Below, piece by piece: positions 8,280 through 20,005 of a stretch of 64,000 nucleotides of DNA. Under the pieces are notes generated by a model. The model was not told the DNA's origin and did no database searches. It saw only the letters and a list, made by a program, of their open reading frames with translations. The stretch's first letter is position 1. Every line of letters starts with the position of its first letter. The stretch is from IMG/VR virus record IMGVR_UViG_3300023174_000033, positions 1 to 64,000 of that record; one strand, given 5' to 3'. The translations under genes and the position numbers were made by a program.

Positions 8280-8944
8280 ATTATATTATTTTCTAAACAC
8301 CATTCATCCAAGACTTTTAAAGCCTCCTCCCTTGGTAAATCTCTTACCACTCTACCATTCTCCTTATAGAACTGTGCCCTCATTTGATTATCTATCCCAC
8401 GCTCAGTGAAATCTTCATCCTTTAGGACTGGTTCAGACTTATATGATCTAGGAATTCTAGGAACTTTAGTAAATAATCCCTCACTAGCTTTATCTTTTAA
8501 TAATTGCTCCAAACCTTTAAATGGGTTTTTATCACTTTCCTCACATATAAAATGTCCCATAGCTTTTGTATAATCAGTAGCCCTTGTATTGGGTGCAAAT
8601 ATAGAAACCACAAAACCAATACCACCTTGATCGAATGGTTTGATTAATATAATGTGATCAGTCTCCTCACATCGACAAATCAAAACCTTTAGAACATCTT
8701 TATCACTATATTCATATTGACGATCAAATTCAGCACTAAATGAAACATCACCTATAATAGATTTACACAACTCTTCTATCTTATTAAAAAATCCGTTTGA
8801 TTTCTTATCATCATCCCAAACGAGATACTTATCCCCCATTAACCAACTCTCCCTCCAAGTATTATATTGTTCCGCACTTATCTCTTCATAATAAGTTGAA
8901 AAGTAATCAGTATCAAAATCTTCAAATAATTTTAAGTGTTTCAT
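8276..8944 (-). CDS. Hypothetical protein, MKHLKLFE family
   Basis: N-terminal tag; C-terminal ~50 aa shared with 17280-17969. Confidence 0.7.
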   Translation of the reverse strand: MKHLKLFEDFDTDYFSTYYEEISAEQYNTWRESWLMGDKYLVWDDDKKSNGFFNKIEELCKSIIGDVSFSAEFDRQYEYSDKDVLKVLICRCEETDHIILIKPFDQGGIGFVVSIFAPNTRATDYTKAMGHFICEESDKNPFKGLEQLLKDKASEGLFTKVPRIPRSYKSEPVLKDEDFTERGIDNQMRAQFYKENGRVVRDLPREEALKVLDEWCLENNII

Positions 8945-8996
8945 ATTTTATATATTTATTTTTGGATTACAATTATATTATTGATATTTTTGTCTT

Positions 8997-9221
8997 ATGA
9001 CATACCAAGAAGCTTACGACCTAGCACTTAAATCAAAATGGATTGCAACACCCTGCTTTGTAGGGGAATCCTGTTGGTGTAATATAATCACACCAGAAGT
9101 CCCAATCTTTTATGGCGAAGAAGATAACGAAGAAGTCCAAATAGTTTCATCAGGCGCCATTAATAAACAAATAGCAGAGCATATAGTAAAAGTCCATAAC
9201 CAATCCCTTGAATCAAAATGA
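8997..9221 (+). CDS. Hypothetical protein (CFxGExCWC motif)
   Basis: ORF after TATTTTTG box at 8985-8992. Confidence 0.7.
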   Translation: MTYQEAYDLALKSKWIATPCFVGESCWCNIITPEVPIFYGEEDNEEVQIVSSGAINKQIAEHIVKVHNQSLESK

Positions 9222-9457
9222 TGAATGAATATTATAAACCCCTAATAGTTTTCCTCATAGGTGGTATCATAGGAATTTCTATTCTCATTTTAAAAACACC
9301 CAGTAAAAAATACCCAGTGACAGTTCAATGTTATTGGGAAACAAAAGGTTATCAATCATATCCCACTTTTGAGTGTGATTCTATTAAAGGTGATACTTGT
9401 TATAAAGATGGTAATGTGATTATAACAAAGAATATTATTAACGTTAGTTTTAATTAA
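9218..9457 (+). CDS. Hypothetical membrane-anchored protein
   Basis: N-terminal hydrophobic helix. Confidence 0.6.
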   Translation: MMNEYYKPLIVFLIGGIIGISILILKTPSKKYPVTVQCYWETKGYQSYPTFECDSIKGDTCYKDGNVIITKNIINVSFN

Positions 9458-9494
9458 ATTTGGTTTACAATTATTTTATCCTTACCTTTGTCTT

Positions 9495-9662
9495 ATGAAT
9501 AACACAAAAGTTGAAAGAGCAATCTACCTACAAAAAAAGGCGAACGACCAAATAGATACTTATGGTGAAGCATCCCATGATGTTGTAGATGAACTAATGG
9601 AAATTGTAGATTCCTTAAATGAAGGGGAACAATCACTTATGTTAGAACTTTATTACAAATAA
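9495..9662 (+). CDS. 55-aa hypothetical protein; its TAA stop forms the first TAAC core of the array
   Basis: MNNTKVERAIYLQKKANDQIDTYG…LYYK*, after TACCTTTG at 9483-9490; below the ORF-track cutoff. Confidence 0.7.
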   Translation: MNNTKVERAIYLQKKANDQIDTYGEASHDVVDELMEIVDSLNEGEQSLMLELYYK

Positions 9663-9748
9663 CGGTTGGGTGTATATGTAGGTTTTTAAATAAATACTCT
9701 AATATATACTATTGAACTAAATGAAAAACTTACATATACACCTTGTTA
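9660..9748. repeat. attC-like site 1 (class A)
   Basis: TAAC-GGTTG-GGTGTATATGTAGGTTTT … AAAACTTACATATACACC-TT-GTTA. Confidence 0.85.
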
Positions 9749-9806
9749 TGTGTTAGTAAAAAAAATAAAAACTTATTATGAAACAAAAATTATACAAATT
9801 AAAAAT

Positions 9807-10019
9807 ATGAAAATTAAAGACTTAAAAGATTGGTTGGATACACTAACAAAAGAACACGATGAATGCGAAATTGTGTTTAGAAAAATTGTTGGTAAAGATA
9901 ATAAGGATTATATGATTGCGAAGGATAATAGCATTGATGCTTGTGGAATAGACACAGACAATAATGAGGTTTATTTTTGTGATGAAACGACACACAACAT
10001 TATTGAGAAAAACTCATAA
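9807..10019 (+). CDS. Cassette 1 ORF, hypothetical
   Basis: ATG at 9807 (MKIKDLKDWL…KNS) after the conserved cassette leader. Confidence 0.7.
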   Translation: MKIKDLKDWLDTLTKEHDECEIVFRKIVGKDNKDYMIAKDNSIDACGIDTDNNEVYFCDETTHNIIEKNS

Positions 10020-10037
10020 TTTTTGTTTTATTACTTA

Positions 10038-10085
10038 TAACGTCCGATGATAAACAATCGTTTTAATGTTGTTTATCATTTGTTA
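10038..10085. repeat. attC-like site 2 (class B, 48 bp)
   Basis: TAAC-GTCCG-ATGATAAACAA-TCGTTTTAATG-TTGTTTATCAT-TT-GTTA. Confidence 0.85.
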
Positions 10086-10119
10086 GGTTTAGTATCAAAA
10101 ATTTTATACAAATTAAAAT

Positions 10120-10443
10120 ATGAAAGCAAGAATTAACGAGAATGAAACAAAAGAACTGAATCCAACAGAGATTGGAGAAAGGTTCATCAATGTAATGAAT
10201 AAATTACAAGAATTAGGTGTTTTTTATGGTGAAAACTATGGTGGTAAATACGAAGAAAAATATCCACATAGTTGTTATATGTTTAATATTAGATTGGATA
10301 GACATCGTTCTGGTTTTGAAAGTTTAATTGAAGATGGGTGTGGTGATAACACAGAAGAAGTTGAAGTTGCAAGAGAAGATACATCAGTTGAAGAATTATT
10401 GGTTCTTTTGGAAAAGACTTTCGATAAACTAAAAAACTCATAA
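10120..10443 (+). CDS. Cassette 2 ORF, hypothetical
   Basis: ORF between complementary cassette ends; ends in KNS*. Confidence 0.7.
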   Translation: MKARINENETKELNPTEIGERFINVMNKLQELGVFYGENYGGKYEEKYPHSCYMFNIRLDRHRSGFESLIEDGCGDNTEEVEVAREDTSVEELLVLLEKTFDKLKNS

Positions 10444-10537
10444 AATTTTTGATATTGAATATAACTAGCGGCTACACGCAGGTTTATTGTGTATATACAA
10501 CAAATTAAAAAACTCAAAACAATAATTTAATTGAACC

Positions 10538-10650
10538 TAACGGTTGGGTGTATGAGAAGGTTTTTTATTTGGAAATCTCGAAATTTATACCTACCTTTGT
10601 ATGAGTAGTGTGGCTTTGCACATACTTTCAACTTACAGATAAACTTTATA
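10538..10650. repeat. Degenerate attC-like site (class A left arm, decayed right arm) with an internal promoter
   Basis: TAACGGTTGGGTGTATGAGAAGGTTT is identical to the left arm at 12504. Right arm AACTTACAGATAAACTTTATAAAC lacks GTT. TTTG (10568) and TACCTTTG (10592) lie inside. Confidence 0.65.
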
Positions 10651-10663
10651 AACAGTTTTTACT

Positions 10664-10879
10664 ATGGAAGAATTTACACAACATGATTGGAATCACATGC
10701 ACGATTGTATATTACATGCAACTTGGAATACCACGAAGAAGAAATCTACAAGAGAAGAACTTGTGGAAATTTTCAATAAACTACCAGAAGACTTAAAAGA
10801 AGATGCTTACGAATGGGGTATGTCAGATACGTTGTGGAGAGATAAGTTTATTGAATGGTATGAGGAAAATTGTTTATAA
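10664..10879 (+). CDS. Cassette 3 ORF, hypothetical
   Basis: Stop codon overlaps the TAAC core at 10877. Confidence 0.7.
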   Translation: MEEFTQHDWNHMHDCILHATWNTTKKKSTREELVEIFNKLPEDLKEDAYEWGMSDTLWRDKFIEWYEENCL

Positions 10880-10955
10880 CGGTCGCAAATATGAGAAGTA
10901 AATCTTTTCATTAAAAATTAGGCAAAGTAAGATTTATTTCTTATATTTGTTGTTA
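10877..10955. repeat. attC-like site (class C, 79 bp)
   Basis: TAAC-GGTCG-CAAATATGAGAAGTAAATCTT … AAGATTTATTTCTTATATTTG-TT-GTTA. Confidence 0.85.
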
Positions 10956-10985
10956 TAAGTAGTAAAAACTAAAAAAATTATACAA

Positions 10986-11201
10986 ATGGAACAAAAACTC
11001 GAATTAAATTACAAGGAACAAATTGATTTTCTAACTTCAAAAAGAGATATAGAGTTGGAAAAATTGGATAATATGTTAAAAAGTAATTCAGATAGATTAA
11101 AAATAGAAAATCAATTTGATACACTCATGAAAGAACAAAATCAACTATCACTTACAATAGGTGCTAATAGAGTTTTTGTTAATAGTAGATATGGTAAATA
11201 A
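10986..11201 (+). CDS. Cassette 4 ORF a, coiled-coil-like hypothetical
   Basis: ORF inside the cassette. Confidence 0.65.
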   Translation: MEQKLELNYKEQIDFLTSKRDIELEKLDNMLKSNSDRLKIENQFDTLMKEQNQLSLTIGANRVFVNSRYGK

Positions 11202-11218
11202 TTTTAAAAATTAAACAA

Positions 11219-11440
11219 ATGAAAAGAACTAAATTAACAGATTTTATTTTGAAAAACTTACGATGGACTAGTATATTTTTGTGGAATCAAATATATTTTA
11301 ACAGATTAAGTAAAGCGTTAGAAGAATTTAAAAACAATTCAGATGTGGAAACTATTTCACACAAAAATAATGATGTAATTAAAAGTTTTTCAAAAGAAAA
11401 TTTAGGTGATAGTACTATATATAAAGTTGAGGTAGTTTAA
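11219..11440 (+). CDS. Cassette 4 ORF b, hypothetical
   Basis: Second ORF in the same cassette. Confidence 0.6.
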   Translation: MKRTKLTDFILKNLRWTSIFLWNQIYFNRLSKALEEFKNNSDVETISHKNNDVIKSFSKENLGDSTIYKVEVV

Positions 11441-11459
11441 TTTTAGTTTTTATTACTTA

Positions 11460-11538
11460 TAACTGTTGCAAATATGAGAAGTAAATCTTTTCATTAAAAA
11501 ATAAACAAAATAAGATTTATTTCTTATATTTGTTGTTA
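11460..11538. repeat. attC-like site (class C, 79 bp)
   Basis: TAAC-TGTTG-CAAATATGAGAAGTAAATCTT … AAGATTTATTTCTTATATTTG-TT-GTTA; near-identical to 10877-10955. Confidence 0.85.
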
Positions 11539-11552
11539 TATTAGTTAAATTA

Positions 11553-11801
11553 TTGTTTTACAGATTAAAAAAGAAAAAAGTGAAAGAACAAATTATTGAA
11601 ATTTTAGGAAAAAACCACACCACTCCAATACAATTTGATGAATTTAATGGTTTTTATGGACTATATACATATAAAAATGGTGTATATGTGTTTAAGGAAG
11701 GTGAAGATATTGATTATGATGATATTAATGATAGTGATAAAAATAAAATATTAAAAGTGGTTTTGTCTAAAAAATGGAAATTAAATAAATCTCTACAATA
11801 A
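11553..11801 (+). CDS. Cassette 5 ORF, hypothetical
   Basis: ORF filling the cassette; start codon uncertain (TTG or a later GTG). Confidence 0.6.
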   Translation: MFYRLKKKKVKEQIIEILGKNHTTPIQFDEFNGFYGLYTYKNGVYVFKEGEDIDYDDINDSDKNKILKVVLSKKWKLNKSLQ

Positions 11802-11820
11802 ACAATAATTTAATTGAATA

Positions 11821-11868
11821 TAACGTCTGATGATAAACAATCGTTTTAATGTTGTTTATCATTTGTTA
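11821..11868. repeat. attC-like site (class B, 48 bp)
   Basis: TAAC-GTCTG-ATGATAAACAA-TCGTTTTAATG-TTGTTTATCAT-TT-GTTA; 1 nt different from 10038-10085. Confidence 0.85.
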
Positions 11869-11914
11869 TAAGTATGTAAAACAAAAATTATACAAATTAA
11901 AAAAAAATAAAATT

Positions 11915-12148
11915 ATGAGTTGGAAATTAAACACAGAAGATGAAAATCCATTATGGAGACAATATATGGATGAACTTGAAAAAATGAATCCAGAGGAATC
12001 AAGAAAATGGGAGGTAGTAAGAGAATTACCAGTTGAATTACCATTTAAGACAACAACGACATCCAATTATTCAGAAGATGAATTTTTGGAAAAATTGAAA
12101 ACTGATGAGGACTTTAATAAGAGATGGGGTAAATTAAAAAACTCATAA
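11915..12148 (+). CDS. Cassette 6 ORF, hypothetical
   Basis: ATG at 11915 (MSWKLNTEDE…KLKNS) after the conserved leader. Confidence 0.7.
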   Translation: MSWKLNTEDENPLWRQYMDELEKMNPEESRKWEVVRELPVELPFKTTTTSNYSEDEFLEKLKTDEDFNKRWGKLKNS

Positions 12149-12166
12149 TTTTTGTTTTATTACTTA

Positions 12167-12214
12167 TAACGATTGCAAATATATTGTCGTTTTAATGCAA
12201 TATATTTGTTGTTA
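12167..12214. repeat. attC-like site (class C-type stem with class B loop, 48 bp)
   Basis: TAAC-GATTG-CAAATATATTG-TCGTTTTAATG-CAATATATTTG-TT-GTTA. Confidence 0.85.
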
Positions 12215-12252
12215 TAGGTAGTTTATTAATTTTCTAAAACGGATTAAAAGAT

Positions 12253-12495
12253 ATGACACACGAATACATAAATGAATTATTAGAAAGACAGGGTGAAAAT
12301 CCTGTTTTGTTAGATAGATGTGTATTAAACATCACTGATGGTAGAAGTATAATTTACACACTTTGTGGTGATACTGATTATGAACAACGAGAACTTGAAA
12401 TATGCTATGCTGATAAACATAGTGATGTTATTTGGAAAGGTATCGTTAAAACAAAACAGGAATTGGAAAAGGTAGTTTTAGAAAATTTAAAATAA
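12253..12495 (+). CDS. Cassette 7 ORF, hypothetical
   Basis: ORF between complementary ends. Confidence 0.7.
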   Translation: MTHEYINELLERQGENPVLLDRCVLNITDGRSIIYTLCGDTDYEQRELEICYADKHSDVIWKGIVKTKQELEKVVLENLK

Positions 12496-12503
12496 ATTAC
12501 ATA

Positions 12504-12591
12504 TAACGGTTGGGTGTATGAGAAGGTTTGCTTTGATGAACTTTCAAATTATCACCAATGCTGATAGCAAACTTTCTTATACACCTTGTTA
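12504..12591. repeat. attC-like site (class A, 88 bp)
   Basis: TAAC-GGTTG-GGTGTATGAGAAGGTTTGCT … AGCAAACTTTCTTATACACC-TT-GTTA. Confidence 0.85.
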
Positions 12592-12702
12592 TAACCAGTA
12601 CGGTAAAATTGCACAAATGTTTGATTGAAATACTGAACAAAAACTTTTAAAAATGTGCGGTGGGAATTTTAAAATTGAATATTTATATATAAAGTAAAAA
12701 CT

Positions 12703-13200
12703 ATGAGTGAAGATATACGCAAAATGATTGATAAAGTTAAGAAATTTAAACAATTTATTAGCGAAAGTAATACTACAAATTATATCAATTGGAGTGATTT
12801 ACCAATCCAAGTAAAAAATGACATAACTGAAAATTTGAGAGATAATATACGATATATTAAAGAAGAATATTGGAATAGTGAAGCGTTGAGAGATTCTATT
12901 GACGATTCTATTAATAAACCAATTTTTAAAATAGAATATAAAAATGTTGATGTTTTGTATAACGAACTTATACAAATTGGTTGGGGTATTAGTGAAGACA
13001 ATGTTAAAAGATTAATTTCTGCTCTAAAAAATGGTGCTGAACTTGACCCAATTATACTTGAAAACGGTAAATTTTTTGATGGTGGTCATAGATTGACTGC
13101 ATACAAAAAAATGAAAAAAGAATTAATACCTACAATTGATATTGGATTTTTGATGAATTTCGATTGGGAAAAATGGGACAACGGACAGGCTGATTTTTAA
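12703..13200 (+). CDS. Cassette 8 ORF, ParB/Srx-like domain protein
   Basis: LDPIILENGKFFDGGHRLTAY motif. Confidence 0.7.
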   Translation: MSEDIRKMIDKVKKFKQFISESNTTNYINWSDLPIQVKNDITENLRDNIRYIKEEYWNSEALRDSIDDSINKPIFKIEYKNVDVLYNELIQIGWGISEDNVKRLISALKNGAELDPIILENGKFFDGGHRLTAYKKMKKELIPTIDIGFLMNFDWEKWDNGQADF

Positions 13201-13247
13201 AAGTTTTTGAAAAAAAATGCTAAATAGAACGTATAATGTAATATTGG

Positions 13248-13280
13248 TTATAACTAACATATATCTACAATAACCTGTTT
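13248..13280. other. Candidate attI-like primary site at the integrase-proximal end of the array
   Basis: The last cassette ends in TAAC (13251-13254), followed by non-palindromic TAACATATATCTACAATAAC about 50 bp before the integrase start. Confidence 0.45.
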
Positions 13281-13305
13281 TTCCACCTTTTAAACAAACT
13301 GGCAA

Positions 13306-13814
13306 GTGAAAAAAACCAACTATTACGAAATTTGTAAAACAAAACTGCAATACCTAAACTACTCACCCAAAACCCAATCTACCTATTTACACTATGTAGA
13401 GCAATTCCTAAACGCAACCAAAATACCACCTACAAGGCTTACCTCACAAGATTTTCAATCCTATCTTGATAACTTTAATTTCACCTCAACATCCCAACAA
13501 AATCAAGTAATAAATTCAATCCGATTTCTATATAAGTTTGGACTGAATAAGAAATATGATAAGGTTTCTTTCAAAAGACCTAAATCAGAAAAAAAACTAC
13601 CTAAAGTAGTTGATTCCGATTTTATACTCAATAAACTTGACCAAATAGGTAATATCAAACACAAAACTATACTAACACTAACCTTTTCTGTGGGTCTTAG
13701 AGTATCTGAAATAACTAACCTTAAAATTGAAGATATTGACTCTAAACGAATGATAATCCATATCAAAAATGCGAAAGGTAGAAAAGATAGAATAGTCCCA
13801 CTTTCACAAAAAGT
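13306..13814 (+). pseudogene. Tyrosine recombinase (integron-integrase/XerD-like), N-terminal part
   Basis: NYSPKTQSTY…F, QNQVINSIRFLY, KKLPKV, GLRVSE..NLKIEDID and KGRKDRIVPL motifs; breaks off at the GIY-YIG gene. Confidence 0.9.
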
Positions 13815-14600
13815 CTATTTCAAATTATAATCTTCTAAATATCTAAAATTAGTATTATTTTTTATTTGTCCTAAAAGTTTAGCTTTTAAGGTTCTTACCT
13901 TTATTCCCATTGAATCGGCTGCTTCCTTTTTACTCGGAAAAATTTCTCCAGTTTCAATGTTTATAATTGGTCTTTTATTATGAGCTACTTTTCCTTTATT
14001 CGATTCACTTATTTTTTTCTTTGTTTCACCTGAATGTTTTTTACCCGACATTGGTTTATGATGAGCATGATTTTTACTAATTTTTTTTCTTATATCATCT
14101 GTAAGTTTTACACCCTTTCTATTTGAATTGCCCTTAGTGAAATTATTACCTAATAACCAACCATTTTCTAAATATGATTCCAATTGATTTACACATACTA
14201 GAATACACTCATTATCTTTATAAATCCATTTTTTACCAAATTGTGGATTTTTTTCATTACTGAAATCAGCTCTATTCATTTTCATTAATAACTTAGTATA
14301 ATCAGACATTATATAACTATCACCACCCTCCCTCAAATTTAATCCAATGTCACTATTAAAGCTATTAAACTCTGCTATGTATTTTTTCTCTAAAAAATTT
14401 AATTCATCTCTTTCACATTCTACAAGAATAGAAAATTCATGATTTTCCCAACCATATTTTTTTATAGAATTATATAAAAAAGTTTGTTCTATGCATTTTT
14501 CCGATTTATATGATCTAATTCTTCTCTTTATATCAATTGATTGTCCTATATAAATTCTACCAGATGGAGAAACTATTTTATATATACCACATATTTTCAT
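13815..14600 (-). CDS. GIY-YIG homing endonuclease with NUMOD3-like repeats
   Basis: GIYKIVSPSGRIYIGQS…R…Y, LE..YI..FNS…GLNL..GG, GKKHSGETKKKIS and C-terminal IINIETGEIFPS..EAA motifs. Confidence 0.92.
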   Translation of the reverse strand: MKICGIYKIVSPSGRIYIGQSIDIKRRIRSYKSEKCIEQTFLYNSIKKYGWENHEFSILVECERDELNFLEKKYIAEFNSFNSDIGLNLREGGDSYIMSDYTKLLMKMNRADFSNEKNPQFGKKWIYKDNECILVCVNQLESYLENGWLLGNNFTKGNSNRKGVKLTDDIRKKISKNHAHHKPMSGKKHSGETKKKISESNKGKVAHNKRPIINIETGEIFPSKKEAADSMGIKVRTLKAKLLGQIKNNTNFRYLEDYNLK

Positions 14601-14633
14601 TAAAAACTAATTAATTTACATTATATATTAAAA

Positions 14634-14735
14634 ATGATAATCCAAAAAATAGCAGGTCACTCAAATGTTAAAACAACTGAAATATATACACACGTCTCAA
14701 ATCAATTACTAAGTAAAGTAAATCTACCCATATGA
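14634..14735 (+). pseudogene. C-terminal remnant of the tyrosine recombinase (catalytic Tyr box)
   Basis: Translates as MIIQKIAGHSNVKTTEIYTHVSNQLLSKVNLPI*, matching IQxLxGHxxxxTTxIYTH. Confidence 0.9.
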
Positions 14736-15076
14736 AAGTAATTATAGCAGGCTCAAGAAACTTTAATGACTACAACTTACTAAAATCAAGTTGTGATAAC
14801 CTACTTACACAATTCACTAATATAGAAATAGTTAGTGGAACCGCCAGAGGTGCAGATAAACTTGGTGAAAAATATGCAAGGGAGAAAGGTTATGATATAA
14901 AACAATTCCCAGCTAATTGGAATTTGGGTAAAAGTGCTGGATATATTAGAAATGATGAAATGGCACAGTATGCAGATATGTTAATTGCGTTCTGGGATGG
15001 AACAAGTAGAGGAACTAAACATATGATTGATTTGGCTAATAAAAGAAGTTTAAAGGTTGAAATTGTAAGATATTAA
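14732..15076 (+). CDS. SLOG/YspA-like (DUF2493) protein
   Basis: KVIIAGSR, IVSGTARGAD, AGYIRN..M and FWDG.SRGT motifs. Confidence 0.85.
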   Translation: MKVIIAGSRNFNDYNLLKSSCDNLLTQFTNIEIVSGTARGADKLGEKYAREKGYDIKQFPANWNLGKSAGYIRNDEMAQYADMLIAFWDGTSRGTKHMIDLANKRSLKVEIVRY

Positions 15077-15104
15077 AATAAATAAGTTTTTATATATATC
15101 ACAT

Positions 15105-15479
15105 ATGGAACACTTATGTGATTTTTTGGATTTTGTAGAACTTCTTGAAGAATCTAATGACCCAAAAGTAGGAACTGGTAAAAAACCTAAAGGTTCCAGT
15201 AGAAGACTTTACACAGATGAAAACCCGAATGATACAGTATCAGTTAAGTTCAGAACTAAAGAAGATGTTCAACAAACAATCAATAGCCAATCATTCAAAT
15301 CTAAATCACATAAAAGACAATCACAAATACTAAACCTTATTGAACAAAGGTTAAGAGTGGCTCATAAAAGAGCAAAAGATACAGATACAAAAGAAAGATT
15401 GAAAAGAGCTCACGATTATATAAAATCAAAATGTGAAGCATCTAAAAAGAAAACCCAAAGGTTAAAAGAAATTGGGTAA
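15105..15479 (+). CDS. Basic hypothetical phage protein
   Basis: ORF after a TATATA element; DPKVGTGKKPKGS.RRLYTDENP segment. Confidence 0.7.
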   Translation: MEHLCDFLDFVELLEESNDPKVGTGKKPKGSSRRLYTDENPNDTVSVKFRTKEDVQQTINSQSFKSKSHKRQSQILNLIEQRLRVAHKRAKDTDTKERLKRAHDYIKSKCEASKKKTQRLKEIG

Positions 15480-15561
15480 GTTTTATCGGGGTAAATAAAC
15501 AATTGTCTGAGCATAAAGTAAAATTACATAACCAATCCCTTGAATCAAAATAACTAATTAT

Positions 15562-16518
15562 ATGAAAATATTCACCGGTTCAAATAACAATCAATTAAGT
15601 CAAAAAATATCAAATAGCTTACAATCTATTTCAAATGGGTATTATACTGACTCATTCGATAGTCTTAAAATAGAGAAGTTTTCAGATGGTGAAATACTTC
15701 CACTCTTTACCGAATCTGTTAGAAATCAAGATGTTTATTTTATACAAAGTTTAGTAAGCAGTGATGCAATAATGGAAACCTTACTCGTATCAGATGCCGC
15801 TAAAAGAGCAGGTTGCTTATCTTTTAATCTAATATCACCTTATATGGGATACTCAAGACAAGATAAAACAGATCACCTAAGATCTTCTATTGGCTCTAAA
15901 GTTATCGCTGATATATTTGAAAAAATAGGAGTTAATAATTTATTCACTATCGACCTACACGCATCCTCTATTCAAGGATTCTATAACATACCAGTTATAC
16001 ATTTAAATGGTAATAAAATATTTATTGATTACTTAAAAGATCTAAACATTGATGATATTTGCATCGTAGCACCAGATCAAGGTGCGGTTAAAAGAGCCTC
16101 GGATTACTGTAAAGCTTTCCCAGATTCTACATTCGCAATGATTAATAAAAAAAGAACTAAACCAAATGAAGTTCATTCAATGGAGCTAGTTGGTGATGTT
16201 AAAGATAAAAACGTTGTTATCGTTGATGATATAGCAGATACCCTTGGAACTTTGAAAAAAGCATCAGAACTTGTTAAATCACACGGGGCCAAATCAGTTA
16301 GAGCAATTTGTACTCACGGAATCCTTTCCTCAAGTGCTATCAAAAATCTTGAAGAATCCCCTTTAATAGAATTATTGGTTTCAGATAGTATAGAATCTGT
16401 TATTGATAAAGCAACTTGGAGTAATAAGTTAAGAGTCGTAACTTGCGCTGATATCCTATCCAAAACAGTTATAGCAGTCCACCATAAGAAAAGTGTACAC
16501 GAAATAAACATAATCTAA
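15562..16518 (+). CDS. prs: Ribose-phosphate pyrophosphokinase
   Basis: FSDGEI, ESVR, YSRQDK, DLHA..IQGFY, PDQG, VDDIADT.GT and THG motifs. Confidence 0.95.
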   Translation: MKIFTGSNNNQLSQKISNSLQSISNGYYTDSFDSLKIEKFSDGEILPLFTESVRNQDVYFIQSLVSSDAIMETLLVSDAAKRAGCLSFNLISPYMGYSRQDKTDHLRSSIGSKVIADIFEKIGVNNLFTIDLHASSIQGFYNIPVIHLNGNKIFIDYLKDLNIDDICIVAPDQGAVKRASDYCKAFPDSTFAMINKKRTKPNEVHSMELVGDVKDKNVVIVDDIADTLGTLKKASELVKSHGAKSVRAICTHGILSSSAIKNLEESPLIELLVSDSIESVIDKATWSNKLRVVTCADILSKTVIAVHHKKSVHEINII

Positions 16519-16573
16519 TCATTAATCTTTCATCTAAAAAGAAAACCCAAAGATTAAAAGAAGGTAAGTAATT

Positions 16574-17278
16574 TTAAAATAGTTTTTCCTTGTAAGACTT
16601 ATGACATTGTAATTCTAACCCATTAGAGATACGTCTTACAGTTGCAATGTGCTTACCCCCATCAAAAAAATGATAAAACATTAAACCAATATCTCTAATA
16701 CAAGGATACAATCTGAATAACTCTAAAAACTTCTCATAATCTATTTCTTTAGACTCAGAATCCAATTCCCTTAAAGGTGATTTAAGTAAACTCAACATCT
16801 CCTCATTATCATTGTAAGGAGTTGTCTTTTCAGCCCACTCTTCAAACCCATCCCATCCATCTATAATACAATATAAAGTAACCATTGCAATAGATTCACT
16901 TTCAACCCTTGTTGGAAATACTACAGGAACATTTACCTGTATAACAAAATAATCATCATTATAAAAATTAATACGAAAATCAGGCTCTATTCCAACTTCA
17001 GTCTTATAATATAATGTAAGTACATTTGGCACTAGTTTTGAAGAAACACCATTAAACTCAATACCAGTAACTTCTGGTTTTAAGTAACCATTTAAAATCT
17101 TTAATATCCTTTGCTTATCACCTTCAGTTATTTTGTGTCTACCTTTTATTTCTTGTAAATCATCCATCATATAATCATACTCATCCTCATCTAAATCCAT
17201 ATAGGTTTTATTCTGCCTATTGAATATATCCCATAGTTCAGATTCGTTTAATTGATTAAATGATTTTAAGTGTTTCAT
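16574..17278 (-). CDS. Hypothetical protein, MKHLK family
   Basis: MKHLKSFNQLNE tag; DDYF…DGWDG motif resembling the 39.4-44 kb family. Confidence 0.7.
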   Translation of the reverse strand: MKHLKSFNQLNESELWDIFNRQNKTYMDLDEDEYDYMMDDLQEIKGRHKITEGDKQRILKILNGYLKPEVTGIEFNGVSSKLVPNVLTLYYKTEVGIEPDFRINFYNDDYFVIQVNVPVVFPTRVESESIAMVTLYCIIDGWDGFEEWAEKTTPYNDNEEMLSLLKSPLRELDSESKEIDYEKFLELFRLYPCIRDIGLMFYHFFDGGKHIATVRRISNGLELQCHKSYKEKLF

Positions 17279-17279
17279 A

Positions 17280-17969
17280 TTATTTATTATTCATATCCCA
17301 TTTATCCAAAACCTTTAAAGCTTCTTCTCTGGGTAAATCCCCTACCTCCTTACCATGTTCCTTGTAAAACTTAGCCTTCATTTGATTGTCCATTCCACGC
17401 TCGATAAAATGTTCATCCTTTAAGATTGGTTCAGACTTATAAGCTTTTGGTTCCTTTTTAATCTTCTTATGTAAACAAGGCGATTCAGTCCAAACGTGTA
17501 ATGTAACACCTTCTTCCTTAGACATCTGAATCAATTCTTCATAAGACAAGGATCCAACCATACCACTATCAATTAACTGCTGTTGATACTCAACTATTGG
17601 TAGATAATCCCAATTCTTAAAGAAAAGTTGCCCAAGTCCACCACTGCCTATTTGTTTTGTAAACCCAAATCTAGCACCTTCTTGTGGTATTATCTCAAAT
17701 GCATTTCCAAACTTATCATAATTATTATCAGCCGGTCTGAAAAACATATGTACAGATTTAGTAGGGTCTTGTATTCCAAACTTAGTTGACCAGTTAGTCA
17801 TGAATTTTCTATAATTTTCATCATACCACATATCCCCTAAATGAACCTTTCTTTGACTAGGGTCATCTATGTATTCATCCTTATCTGCCCTTGAACCTCT
17901 TATCAAGGTTTTGTTGAATACATCTGGGAAATTAGATTGGAAGTTTTCGAATAGTTTAATATGTTTCAT
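17280..17969 (-). CDS. Hypothetical protein, MKHIKLFE family
   Basis: N-terminal tag; C-terminal module shared with 8276-8944. Confidence 0.7.
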   Translation of the reverse strand: MKHIKLFENFQSNFPDVFNKTLIRGSRADKDEYIDDPSQRKVHLGDMWYDENYRKFMTNWSTKFGIQDPTKSVHMFFRPADNNYDKFGNAFEIIPQEGARFGFTKQIGSGGLGQLFFKNWDYLPIVEYQQQLIDSGMVGSLSYEELIQMSKEEGVTLHVWTESPCLHKKIKKEPKAYKSEPILKDEHFIERGMDNQMKAKFYKEHGKEVGDLPREEALKVLDKWDMNNK

Positions 17970-18018
17970 GATATTATATATATTCGCATCCTTTAATGAA
18001 TTCTTTTTATATAATTAT

Positions 18019-18591
18019 TCACTCATATAACCCTAAACCCATATACTTATGAAATGAGATAGAATATCTTTCTTCAGTTATCGTTTCATCTTGTTCTACA
18101 TCATGAGTAAATTCTGATTGGAATTCCCCACCCATATGAACCATTTCACCCATCACTAAAGGTATATCTTTTACTTTAATATCTGTGGTTTTATCAAAGA
18201 CTCTAAAGTTTCTCAACCCACCATAAGATATTAATAAGACGCCATTTAGTGGGTGGTTTTGACTATCAGAATGTTTTTCAATATATTGTGAACCATCTTT
18301 ATAATAGTTTATTATTATACCATTATAATCTGAATTAAACCTAACATTAATAAAATCAAGGATTTCTTTTAAAGCGGGTGTTAACTTTTGGGATTTGCAC
18401 ACCCTAAACTTCCCATACATATAATCTTCTGTAATAACATCAGAAAAGAAGCTAACCTTTCTGGTTGTAACATCTTCTAACTTATCTTTACACTCTTCTA
18501 TACACCTATCAAGTAAGTCAGTATTATTAACGGCATAGATGTTTAAAAAAGATGAATTGGTTTTAATCACTTCACTTTTCAACTGTATCAT
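18019..18591 (-). CDS. AlkB-family 2OG-Fe(II) dioxygenase
   Basis: N.Y.DG..I..HSD, ISYG..R.F, MGG.FQ..FTH and R.SISF motifs. Confidence 0.88.
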   Translation of the reverse strand: MIQLKSEVIKTNSSFLNIYAVNNTDLLDRCIEECKDKLEDVTTRKVSFFSDVITEDYMYGKFRVCKSQKLTPALKEILDFINVRFNSDYNGIIINYYKDGSQYIEKHSDSQNHPLNGVLLISYGGLRNFRVFDKTTDIKVKDIPLVMGEMVHMGGEFQSEFTHDVEQDETITEERYSISFHKYMGLGLYE

Positions 18592-18633
18592 ATATTATAT
18601 ATGATTTTAGTTAAGAAATGTCTGATTTAAAGT

Positions 18634-19236
18634 TTATTTTTTTCTGAAATCATCACTCCTTGAATAATAAGTTAATCCAGAGTTATCATGCCTAACATAA
18701 CCATAAAATGATAAGATTATACTAAATAAACCCCATACAACAAAACCCAATATCATGCCCAAAAAAGCTGTAACCTTAAAATCAAGAACCATAGTTGTTG
18801 AGAATAAACTTGTTAATAAATTTATTATTACCGCATTTGGAATACCACCAGTAAATAAGTTTATTTTACCATACTGCTTCAAACTATACATAATTTTCAC
18901 AGCTAAACTCTCACCATCCTTTAATTCATCTATATAGTATAATTTTTCATTTTTCATTTCTATACCTAAAATGCTAGACATCTTCATAAAGTTCTCCTTG
19001 GTTGGCTTTACTTCTGTTGTACCAAAATTCTCTTTTAGAAAATCTCTTATATTCTGAACCTCTTCTTCTGGTAACTCTAACTTACTTCCAAACTTAGATA
19101 CCATACTACTAATCATAGATTTACTTGATGAAAGTAAATCGCTTAATACTTCACCAGAATGTTTTACTACATCGGTTGGTAAAAATCCCATTTCAACCTC
19201 CTCGTTGAATTTTTTATAATTTGATAAGTGTTTCAT
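18634..19236 (-). CDS. Membrane protein, MKHL family; paralog of 32775-33410
   Basis: Likely start MKHLSNYKKFNEEVEMG; two C-terminal hydrophobic helices. Confidence 0.65.
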   Translation of the reverse strand: MKHLSNYKKFNEEVEMGFLPTDVVKHSGEVLSDLLSSSKSMISSMVSKFGSKLELPEEEVQNIRDFLKENFGTTEVKPTKENFMKMSSILGIEMKNEKLYYIDELKDGESLAVKIMYSLKQYGKINLFTGGIPNAVIINLLTSLFSTTMVLDFKVTAFLGMILGFVVWGLFSIILSFYGYVRHDNSGLTYYSRSDDFRKK

Positions 19237-19279
19237 AGAAGTAATTTTTTTTAACACTTTATATATTATTTTTTAAACC

Positions 19280-20005
19280 CTAAATATATTTAATAATCCC
19301 TAACCACCCCAATAACCTAATAATAGGATAAGTAGGGTCAAATTCAAACCATTTAACCCCAAAATTAGCCCTATTAGGTAGTTTGTGGTGGTTATTTTGA
19401 TATAACTCACCCATCATTAGAACATCAATAGCTAAAGAGTTCCTACTCTTATCATTATTGTCAAAGTTCTGATATCCATACATATGTCCAGACCAATTAA
19501 CTATAGCTCCATGTACCGGACCCATTAAGAAATGTATAGGTAATAATAAAAACAAATACCACATATCAGTTGGTACAAAACCCATATAAACCACTGTGTA
19601 AAATGTCCCCCACAAAACCCTACTGATCCAAGTATCTCCAATCCTTTCTATTAAGTTCCAAGAAGGTAAGTCTTTAGTTAGACTCCTATCTACTTCTTTA
19701 CCGTTTAATATACTATGATAAATATCCTTGGTCTTCCACATCATAGAAAATACATTACTTGATTCATGTGGTGTATGTGGATCCCTATCAGTATCCGAAT
19801 ACTTATGATGCATTCTATGTAGGACACCATAAGCCCTTGGACTTAAGTAAGATGAGCCTTGGGTTATATAGGTAAATATGTAAAAGAACTTCTCCCAGAA
19901 CTTATTCATTTTAAACATACCATGTGCGCCATAACGATGTAAGAAAAAGGTTTGGGAGAATAGGGATAGATACCAGTGGAGGATAAAGAATAAAATTATA
20001 ATCAT
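19280..20005 (-). CDS. Fatty acid (acyl-CoA/lipid) desaturase
   Basis: His boxes HRYGAH, HRMHH and QNNHH; DPH.P and EFDPT motifs. Confidence 0.92.
   Translation of the reverse strand: MIIILFFILHWYLSLFSQTFFLHRYGAHGMFKMNKFWEKFFYIFTYITQGSSYLSPRAYGVLHRMHHKYSDTDRDPHTPHESSNVFSMMWKTKDIYHSILNGKEVDRSLTKDLPSWNLIERIGDTWISRVLWGTFYTVVYMGFVPTDMWYLFLLLPIHFLMGPVHGAIVNWSGHMYGYQNFDNNDKSRNSLAIDVLMMGELYQNNHHKLPNRANFGVKWFEFDPTYPIIRLLGWLGIIKYI

Follow-up and report, generated by a model that had tools for sequence, protein, structure and literature searches.

Integrons are the textbook system for capturing genes through folded single-strand sites; they are defined by IntI and are regarded as cellular. Clusters of attC sites and integron fragments have also been reported in phage genomes, including a phage of a flavobacterial host (Polaribacter), but those were found with bacterial attC models, were mostly without an integrase, and were tested with bacterial IntI1 (Qi et al. 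2023, PMC9892861). In T4-type phages, promoter-early stem-loops (PeSLs), which are direct repeats made of a sigma-70 promoter plus a terminator, flank ORFans in plastic regions and yield mini-circles, and their authors compared them with integrons (PMC2839356). In Acinetobacter Rep_3/OrfX plasmids, dif modules of two kinds alternate, each bounded by inversely oriented 28-bp duplex pdif sites with conserved arms, and shuffle between replicons (PMC13141974). Here, a 64,000-nucleotide stretch of a 465-kb freshwater phage (the window; positions 1 to 64,000 of IMG/VR record IMGVR_UViG_3300023174_000033) was found to carry an integron-like row of small unknown genes next to a Xer-type recombinase gene. 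No description of such an array was found in the searchable literature.

Unit-specific pairing of cassette ends

The array alternates ORFan cassettes (GTTA...TAAC) with hairpin modules of 40, about 71, about 80, or 105-121 nt (Table 1). A sequence-only reading had proposed that the two ends of each cassette are complementary for 13-30 bp, and the sequences on which it rested were confirmed. To test whether the pairing is specific to each unit, every start was scored against the reverse complement of every end, ignoring the 7-nt core. True pairs averaged 11.4 and all other pairs 2.5, and the true assignment of the eight starts and ends was the single best of 40,320 permutations. Flanks of the same site (the end of one unit and the start of the next) scored only 0-5 and match only in GTTA/TAAC. 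In silico circle junctions were then folded with DNA parameters, giving -20.4 kcal/mol for true pairs against -12.3 (sd 3.1) for shuffled pairs; only 2 of 40,320 permutations were as good, the second arising because c1 and c6 share the same end module. Pairing was weakest in c3 and c8, and c1 is also weak in this window, although its orthologue in the related locus L100 has the full 27-nt pairing.

The analysis was extended to 344 cassettes from 96 related viral loci (related loci are designated L followed by a number). The own-end score averaged 7.2, with 40% scoring 8 or more, whereas across-site pairs and random pairs both averaged 1.8, with 3% scoring 8 or more. Positions 5-8 are Watson-Crick in 76-84% of own pairs but in only 21-55% of across-site pairs; the invariant core is therefore only GTTA/TAAC. 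The median own stem is 15 nt, up to 38. The 105 well-paired cassettes fall into 39 unrelated families of end extension. Position 11 of the outer stem avoids Watson-Crick pairing in about 95% of cassettes, and positions 9-11 gave 96 wobbles on the + strand against 0 on the - strand.

Table 1. Features of the cassette array and the adjacent recombinase locus, in window coordinates
Position	Strand	Feature	Details
9443-9663	+	Left part of interrupted cassette X	Start GTTAGTTTTAATTAAATT; ORF 9495-9662; ends at AATAAC, where a block (hairpin A, c1, hairpin B, c2) appears to have been inserted; the start at 9443 pairs with the end at 10541 (score 19); the nested insertion is an inference, as no uninterrupted copy was found in the loci compared (W, L001-L135)
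9664-9744	+	Hairpin module A (about 80-nt class)	Fold -14.5 kcal/mol on the + strand, -11.7 on the - strand; class modelled in the hairpin alignment
9745-10041	+	Cassette c1	ORF 9807-10019, ORFan; orthologue at L100:3154-3428 is 98% identical in a different upstream context
10042-10081	+	Hairpin module B (40-nt class)	Exact motif in more than 120 IMG/VR stretches
10082-10465	+	Cassette c2	ORF 10120-10443, ORFan; ends pair for about 25 nt
10466-10541	+	Right part of interrupted cassette X	Ends in a common end module (...TTAATTGAACCTAAC)
10542-10644	+	Chimeric or degenerate hairpin module	Left arm of the about-80-nt class, right part from another class; by BLAST of 10542-10880 against the loci, its two halves match different hairpin types
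about 10645-10880	+	Cassette c3	ORF 10664-10879, weak PHROG hits of unknown function only; start mutated from GTT to TTT; ends pair for about 15 nt
10881-10951	+	Hairpin module D (71-nt class)	Fold -13.8 on the + strand, -9.6 on the - strand; exact motif in 16 IMG/VR stretches
10952-11463	+	Cassette c4	Two ORFs, 10986-11201 and 11219-11440; ends pair for 23 nt
11464-11534	+	Hairpin module E (71-nt class)	
11535-11824	+	Cassette c5	ORF 11580-11801; ends pair for about 25 nt with one bulge
11825-11864	+	Hairpin module F (40-nt class)	
11865-12170	+	Cassette c6	ORF 11915-12148; ends pair for about 27 nt; shares its 35-nt end module with c1
12171-12210	+	Hairpin module G (40-nt class, variant)	
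12211-12507	+	Cassette c7	ORF 12253-12495; ends pair for about 32 nt with a 2-nt indel
12508-12587	+	Hairpin module H (about 80-nt class)	Fold -19.0 on the + strand, -16.0 on the - strand
12588-13254	+	Cassette c8	ORF 12703-13200; ends pair for 13 nt; last unit of the array
13248-13275	+	Hairpin-less terminal site, analogous to attI	TTATAAC from the last cassette followed by TAACATATATC
13306-13830	+	Xer-like tyrosine recombinase, N-terminal 174 codons (pseudogene in this window)	Pfam PF13495 plus the first third of PF00589
13815-14600	-	GIY-YIG / NUMOD homing-endonuclease gene	Pfam match; replaces codons about 171-234 of the recombinase, including the HxxR motif (three-frame translation and tblastn coordinates)
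14637-14735	+	Recombinase, C-terminal 32 codons	..GHSNVKTTEIYTHV..; stop codon at 14733-14735

Structure of the hairpin modules

An alignment of 40 hairpins revealed strong covariation, with 16 of 25 pairs showing compensatory changes. G.T was kept in 39/40 and 38/40 at two positions, and a 3-nt bulge was present on the 5' side only. The + strand was the more stable one in 266 of 275 hairpin modules. Judged from folding and covariation, the modules resemble attC sites in being imperfect palindromes with outer AAC/GTT boxes, inner boxes, conserved structure, and variable sequence. In 76 of 120 long hairpin modules the start codon of the downstream ORF lies in the loop, which ties the hairpin to the ORF that follows it.

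The terminal site and the adjacent recombinase gene

The array ends at a site without a hairpin, TATAAC|TA..TATAT, about 50 nt before the recombinase start codon. The same junction (..TAAC|TA..TATAT) is present in 14 relatives found by the hairpin motif and in 7 of 7 loci found by the recombinase alone, and all seven of the latter have hairpin sites upstream on the same strand. Although the recombinase gene is broken in this window, intact relatives right after the array encode proteins of 266-267 aa, and the 266-aa enzyme has all the catalytic motifs of XerA. LR756500.1 has an array but no recombinase homologue at E 1e-20 or better. The recombinase is Xer-like and is not an IntI: TIGR02249 scored 157 bits in two stretches (cut-off 265) and PRK15417 scored 95 bits (cut-off 435). 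The alignment to VchIntIA (2a3v) breaks between query residues 176 and 214, against chain residues 179 and 265, leaving 37 residues where IntI has 85. The missing segment corresponds to the IntI-specific insert, which contacts extrahelical bases in integrons.

Breakpoints among related loci

Near-identical cassettes (95-100%) were found in unrelated contexts, with homology ending at GTT and at AAC. Two contigs with identical recombinases, L141 and L142, differ only by one 623-bp unit (hairpin plus cassette), which in L141 is inserted exactly after AAC at the recombinase-proximal site; the 1500 nt on each side are 100% identical. L018 and L050 share the site and the recombinase gene but carry different last cassettes, being identical downstream of AAC and unrelated upstream of it, and a contig of sequencing run X3 joins c3 directly to the terminal site through the shared TTATAAC. 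On this comparative evidence, three inferences of the sequence-only reading hold: the crossover lies in the GTT/AAC core, the units moved independently, and the stem is longer than the classical 7-bp R box. These data also refine that reading, in that the mobile unit is most likely hairpin plus ORF, with the hairpin on the upstream side of the ORF. However, hairpins and ORF bodies can also assort separately. Cassette homology also breaks on the GTT side, and the upstream hairpin co-travels in 4 informative pairs, the downstream hairpin in 1, and neither in 2, so a single crossover point does not explain everything.

Interpretation and alternatives

Collectively, these results favor, with moderate confidence, a phage-borne cassette platform built like an integron. 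In this model, a small Xer-type tyrosine recombinase gene is preceded by a simple double-stranded core site (TTATA, about 7 nt, then TATAT), and units made of one hairpin module followed by one ORFan body are inserted at that site. The crossover lies in the invariant TAAC, to the resolution that sequence comparison allows, and everything from position 5 of GTTA.. and ..TAAC outward therefore belongs to one unit. In the excised circular unit, the end, the hairpin module, and the start would become contiguous and fold on the + strand into one long hairpin, comprising an outer stem of 13-38 bp, a fixed non-Watson-Crick position 11 bp from the core, the TAAC/GTTA box followed by a G.T pair, a 3-nt bulge, and an inner stem with a TATA box. 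This arrangement mimics the two arms and the roughly 8-bp spacer of the double-stranded site. It is inferred that the recombinase does the work, that a folded single strand is the substrate, and that the outer stem is kept because it stabilizes the otherwise weak AT-rich box in the free unit; no circle junction was seen in the assembled contigs examined, and recombination activity was not observed.

Two other explanations are considered unlikely. The hairpins and start-end pairing could be structures of the transcript, such as processing sites, stabilizing stems, or translational control, with promoter-like boxes in the 3' arms and with the mosaic of cassettes arising by homologous recombination at the conserved hairpins, as proposed for PeSLs. 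The better-folding strand is also the mRNA-sense strand and the conserved G.T pairs would be G.U in RNA, so the asymmetry cannot separate a single-stranded DNA substrate from an RNA structure. Many long hairpins contain the start codon, and weak -35/-10-like hexamers fall in the 3' half of hairpins B, D, E, and F. However, in a scan that does not cover Bacteroidota-type promoters, 28 promoter-like sites were found against 31.6 expected, no terminator-like site lies at any hairpin, and no hairpin has a T-run; RNA evidence is limited to metatranscriptome contigs of uncertain origin. Breakpoints fall exactly at AAC and GTT even where the hairpins on both sides are unrelated, which homologous exchange would not give, and the arrays end at the conserved site beside a recombinase gene. 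The avoidance of Watson-Crick pairing at position 11 is also odd for a stem selected only for stability. Alternatively, each junction (..TTATAAC|G.. and ..T|GTTATAA..) could be a separate asymmetric Xer-type site, with ORF bodies and hairpin modules moving by ordinary two-strand exchange between duplex sites of alternating orientation, a logic that matches dif modules and is consistent with the Xer-like recombinase and with the independent assortment of ORF bodies and hairpin modules in some pairs. Yet duplex sites need no intrastrand pairing, and both stems covary over 20-38 bp, far beyond an 11-bp arm. The two junction types differ by 3 nt in spacer length, which is the conserved 5' bulge, and can only be equivalent when the extra bases are looped out of a folded strand; moreover, spacers differ between hairpin classes that nevertheless exchange partners.

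Two further possibilities have little or no support. The units by definition carry terminal inverted repeats and could be small transposon-like elements moved into hairpin targets by an unidentified transposase, but this is very unlikely: the repeats differ between units, so one transposase could not read them, no transposase gene is linked to the arrays, and the units accumulate at one site beside a tyrosine recombinase gene. No target-site duplication is seen, the L141 insertion sharing only ATAAC at both junctions, as in a conservative crossover, and no unit was seen at many unrelated genomic sites with direct target duplications in 142 loci. A chance product of AT-richness or of a shared consensus might be suspected given that the genome is 25-33% G+C by 2-kb window and all ends share GTTA/TAAC, but this is refuted by the permutation, folding, and related-locus results. 

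A more far-reaching reading, possible but held only tentatively, is that of an independent, virus-encoded counterpart of the integron, in which a Xer-type recombinase without the IntI insert would capture ORFan cassettes in huge freshwater phages through folded single-strand sites. Cassette capture by hairpin recombination would then have arisen, or been kept, outside the IntI lineage and outside cells. If confirmed, the system would show how huge phages gain and shuffle their many unknown small genes and would bear on what a tyrosine recombinase needs in order to accept a hairpin. The unit-specific end pairing is itself a sequence signature that could be used to find such arrays where attC models and IntI searches see nothing.

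Comparison with known systems

As in integrons, a tyrosine recombinase gene lies beside a simple site where cassettes accumulate, the cassettes are separated by imperfect palindromes that begin ..AAC and end GTT.., and the crossover is in that triplet region. The part of the box beyond the crossover belongs to the neighboring cassette and pairs with that cassette's other end, and the cargo is mostly of unknown function. One strand folds better than the other, although whether this corresponds to the strand bias of integron sites is unresolved. Seen from the recombinase, the order of site, ORF, and hairpin is also that of integrons, but the ORFs are reversed and point towards the recombinase, so the hairpin lies upstream of its ORF. 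The recombinase is closest to archaeal XerA and lacks about 48 residues where IntI carries its specific insert, the pairing of a cassette's own ends runs 13-38 bp instead of 7, and the fixed non-Watson-Crick position 11 and 3-nt bulge stand in place of what are probably an extrahelical G and T in classical attC sites. The host is a virulent-looking huge phage. In contrast to the attC clusters reported previously in phages, the arrays described here have their own conserved, non-IntI recombinase and a distinct site anatomy, and they are common in a whole lineage of freshwater phages. The inferred action of a Xer-family enzyme on a hairpin of single-stranded DNA that mimics a duplex core site may have a parallel in CTX phage attP(+), which appears to use XerCD at dif, but CTX is one whole phage genome entering a chromosome through host enzymes, whereas here many small units enter a phage genome beside a phage-encoded enzyme. 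The Acinetobacter dif modules resemble the array in the alternation of two kinds of module between inversely oriented asymmetric junctions, although whether the junctions here are duplex sites of that kind is unresolved, and no hairpin covariation or module-specific extended pairing is described for pdif sites. PeSLs likewise are repeated stem-loop elements flanking ORFans in large virulent phages, but their crossovers are spread over a zone and no dedicated recombinase is present, whereas here the breakpoints are exact, the ends are unit-specific inverted repeats, and a recombinase gene is linked.

Unit-Specific Pairing of Cassette Ends

The window is AT-rich phage DNA with 25-33% G+C by 2-kb window, and it is 100% identical over the recombinase fragments to IMG/VR contig 3300023174_000033, which is 464,605 bp. 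Its best GenBank relative is the 462-kb uncultured phage LR756500.1. The array consists of small + strand ORFs alternating with imperfect palindromes, each of which is preceded by ..TATAAC and followed by GTTATA... The ORF-bearing stretches are referred to here as cassettes (c1-c8) and the palindromes as hairpin modules. The window contains three classes of hairpin module, of about 40, 71 and 80 nt, and relatives add a class of 105-121 nt. Searches of ten cassette proteins against Pfam and PHROGs gave nothing above the cut-offs, although the c8 protein, read by eye, contains ..FFDGGHRLTAYKK.., which resembles the DGxHR motif of ParB/sulfiredoxin-type domains. An Rfam search of 8500-15000 at E up to 1 gave only a chance miRNA hit. 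The locations of individual features are collected in the table.

Features of the array and of related loci (window coordinates unless a locus or record is named)
Feature	Location	Strand	Remarks
Alternating cassettes and hairpin modules	9443-13254	+	ORFs on the + strand
Apparently interrupted cassette, two parts	9443-9663 and 10466-10541		The start at 9443 pairs with the end at 10541, not with 9663
35-nt end module shared by c1 and c6	10007-10041 (c1); 12136-12170 (c6)		Includes the last codons K-N-S-stop
Weak -35/-10-like hexamer pairs	10051-10079, 10919-10947, 11502-11530, 11834-11862		9 of 12 matches; end just before GTT
Position 11 from the G of GTT, examples	10962, 10092, 12598
Chimeric hairpin module	10542-10644		Left arm matches the 80-nt class; right part matches a different class found in L116, L005, L100 and L105 (related loci)
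ORF of c8	12703-13200
Tyrosine recombinase pseudogene	13306-14735		Intact 266-aa gene in relatives
GIY-YIG/NUMOD homing-endonuclease gene	13815-14600	-	Replaces about 64 codons, including HxxR
Joint in a contig of run X3	10873 to 13248		Through the shared TTATAAC
Joints in contigs of runs X1/X8	10088>11541, 11585>10510, 10546>11821
Upstream hairpins with an ATG in the loop, examples	L075:7205; L076:12305 (related loci, oriented coordinates)		Also L005, L007, L008, L016 and others
Locus L001	LR756500.1 385966-419205		33 kb
Array in L001	L001 about 14270-19320
ORF following the L001 array	L001 19497-20066		189 codons
TnpB / IS605 OrfB-type gene	L141/L142 12627-12801		About 6 kb downstream of the recombinase in these relatives

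The sequence-only reading had noted that the two ends of each cassette are complementary, while the flanks on either side of one site do not match beyond the core. To test this, every cassette start was scored against the reverse complement of every cassette end, beyond the 7-nt core. The diagonal averaged 11.4 and the off-diagonal 2.5, the two flanks of one site scored 0-5, and the true assignment was the best of all 40,320 permutations. Folding of in silico junctions with DNA parameters gave -20.4 kcal/mol for true pairs against -12.3 kcal/mol for shuffled ones. When each unit's own upstream hairpin was included, every junction folded into one continuous hairpin of -20 to -28 kcal/mol, compared with -11 to -22 kcal/mol for the same hairpins in their array context. 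Shuffled pairs therefore do not score as well as true pairs, and the observation stands.

To assess its generality, two hairpin motifs were used to retrieve 133 stretches of IMG/VR contigs, many of them from contigs of 100-465 kb. A loose pattern (AAY..RTT plus any stem) was too noisy in this AT-rich DNA, so sites were instead detected as TAAC..GTTA plus a stem score of 10 or more, which still gives about three false sites per 64 kb outside the array. In 344 cassettes of 96 loci, own-end pairing averaged 7.2, whereas across-site and random pairs both averaged 1.8. Only GTTA/TAAC is shared across a site; from position 5 outward, pairing is with the unit's own other end, with a median stem of 15 nt and a maximum of 38. 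The 105 best-paired non-redundant cassettes fall into 39 families of end sequence. Within a family the cargo is usually unrelated, with 635 of 647 pairs sharing no 14-mer, and the end families are older than their cargo. In the window, c1 and c6 have unrelated ORFs but share the same end module. Position 11 is almost never Watson-Crick: in about 95% of cassettes it is G or T opposite a T on the same strand, giving a fixed non-Watson-Crick spot one helical turn from the core, and in a third of cassettes a 1-nt bulge lies next to it. The end side is always T on the + strand, and the start side is G (66 cases) or T (33 cases). Positions 9-11 give 96 wobbles on the + strand and none on the - strand.

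Covariation and Strand Asymmetry of the Hairpin Modules

An alignment of 40 diverse modules of about 80 nt gave 25 consensus pairs, 16 of them with compensatory changes. A G.T pair directly follows AAC in 39 of the 40 modules and another fixed G.T pair is present in 38 of 40. An unpaired run of 3-4 nt occurs on the 5' side only, and a conserved TAT/ATA box lies in the inner stem. Across 275 distinct modules, the first base after AAC is G in 257, the last base before GTT is T in 252, TATA lies at -10 to -7, and the + strand is the more stable in 266. Read as a duplex, the folded site has two TTATA-like arms about 8 bp apart with three extra bases looped out, which is inferred to reflect the geometry of a tyrosine-recombinase core site. 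Weak -35/-10-like hexamer pairs lie in the 3' half of four modules in the window; the inner TATA box could double as a promoter element, but there is no overall enrichment.

A Xer-Like Recombinase Gene and a Hairpin-Less Terminal Site

Right after c8, TTATAAC is followed without a hairpin by TAACATATATC and then by a tyrosine-recombinase gene. In the window this gene is broken: 174 N-terminal codons and 32 C-terminal codons remain, and codons about 171-234 are replaced by the endonuclease gene on the other strand. In at least 14 relatives the gene is intact (266-267 aa), lies on the same strand as the cassettes, and is preceded by the same kind of junction. The protein aligns end to end with Pyrococcus XerA and has the catalytic motifs, but it aligns with VchIntIA only in two pieces, having 37 residues where IntI has 85. 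NCBIfam places it below the cut-offs of XerA, IntI, XerC and XerD. The protein is abundant in metagenomes; among the 120 best matches, 118 are full length and share 76-99% identity with it, and almost all are 266 aa. The nearest cultured relatives are integrases of Polaribacter and Cellulophaga phages, at 38-41% identity. A scan of genome contigs with the 40-nt hairpin found only a 1.4-kb contig binned into a Microbacteriaceae MAG and so gave no host clue. As a check free of the hairpin ascertainment, seven loci were fetched through four recombinase proteins alone, and all seven have hairpin sites upstream on the same strand and the same junction. The 462-kb phage LR756500.1 has a comparable array with unit-specific end pairing, but its 33-kb locus L001 has no recombinase match by tblastn.

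Cassette Boundaries and a Single-Unit Difference

Near-identical cassettes occur in different contexts, with homology stopping at GTT and at AAC. Two related loci, L018 and L050, are 100% identical for 200 nt after AAC and unrelated before it. A joint in a contig of run X3 indicates that a related strain has c3 next to the terminal site and lacks hairpin D (the module between c3 and c4) through c8. The most direct comparison is between L141 and L142, which come from different samples and encode the same recombinase protein. These loci are 100% identical for 1500 nt on both sides and differ by a 623-bp block that starts with a 40-nt hairpin module immediately after ..ACACATAAC and ends with the cassette's own ..GTGTATAAC, followed by TAGATTATATC. 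This is the product expected from inserting a circle (hairpin plus cassette) at the terminal site, or from excising one precisely, with the crossover in ATAAC. It also sets the polarity, in that the hairpin most likely belongs with the ORF downstream of it. In agreement, 76 of 120 long (105-121 nt) hairpin modules hold the start codon in the loop, and the ORF reads through the 3' arm and GTT into the cassette. The peptide across the junction is often ..L(N/H)ISDV before it and S.. after it, and identical cassettes can carry different leaders.

The two parts of the apparently interrupted cassette look like one cassette split by insertion of a block (hairpin A, c1, hairpin B, c2) after an internal AATAAC, which is followed by TAGCGG and resembles the terminal site, where TAAC is followed by TAG. 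However, no uninterrupted copy was found among the loci examined (the window and L001-L135). Another abundant phage in the same lake samples seems to carry a very short unit made almost only of a c5-like start and the ..GAACCTAAC end, with the core letters changed on both sides (GTTAGGTT / AACCTAAC against GTTATATT / AATATAAC). In the assembled contigs to which the read search was confined, the joints found are mostly other phages that share hairpin modules, and no end-hairpin-start junction was seen.

Discussion

If the crossover is in TAAC, the stretch beyond it on either side of a hairpin comes from two different units in the array but from the same unit in the free circular unit. Selection for a stable folded site in the free unit would then keep each unit's two ends complementary and have no effect on the two flanks of a site in the array, which is exactly the pattern seen. 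Collectively, these results confirm the end complementarity and support the interpretation offered in the sequence-only reading, that the units moved independently with crossover in the GTT/AAC core, although no circle was seen in the assembled contigs and no enzymatic activity was seen. The possibility that the recombinase is a lysogeny integrase or a dimer resolvase that is adjacent by chance was considered, but it was rejected as the sole explanation because cassette boundaries coincide with its neighboring site to the nucleotide. An RNA role cannot be excluded, since the favored strand is also the mRNA strand. The GTT side is also a breakpoint in some pairs.

On this reading the system would work like an integron, although the action of the recombinase on a folded single strand is inferred, and its recombinase does not qualify as an IntI. 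Flipped so that the recombinase is on the left, the layout is recombinase, site, then repeated (ORF, hairpin), and the better-folding + strand becomes the bottom strand, as in integrons, although the conserved bulge differs in kind and place from the classical extrahelical bases. No description of this recombinase-linked array, of integron-like arrays in huge phages, or of accession LR756500 was found in the incomplete literature searched, and the array is carried here by huge freshwater phages. The idea of a folded strand that mimics a duplex site is probably shared with CTX-type Xer exploitation. Alternating, inversely bounded modules appear to be shared with Acinetobacter dif modules (PMC13141974), although the two junction types here differ in spacer length, and the setting, ORFan plasticity in large virulent phages, is shared with PeSLs (PMC2839356). 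Clusters of attC sites have been reported in some phages, but these were found with bacterial models and bacterial IntI1 (PMC9892861).
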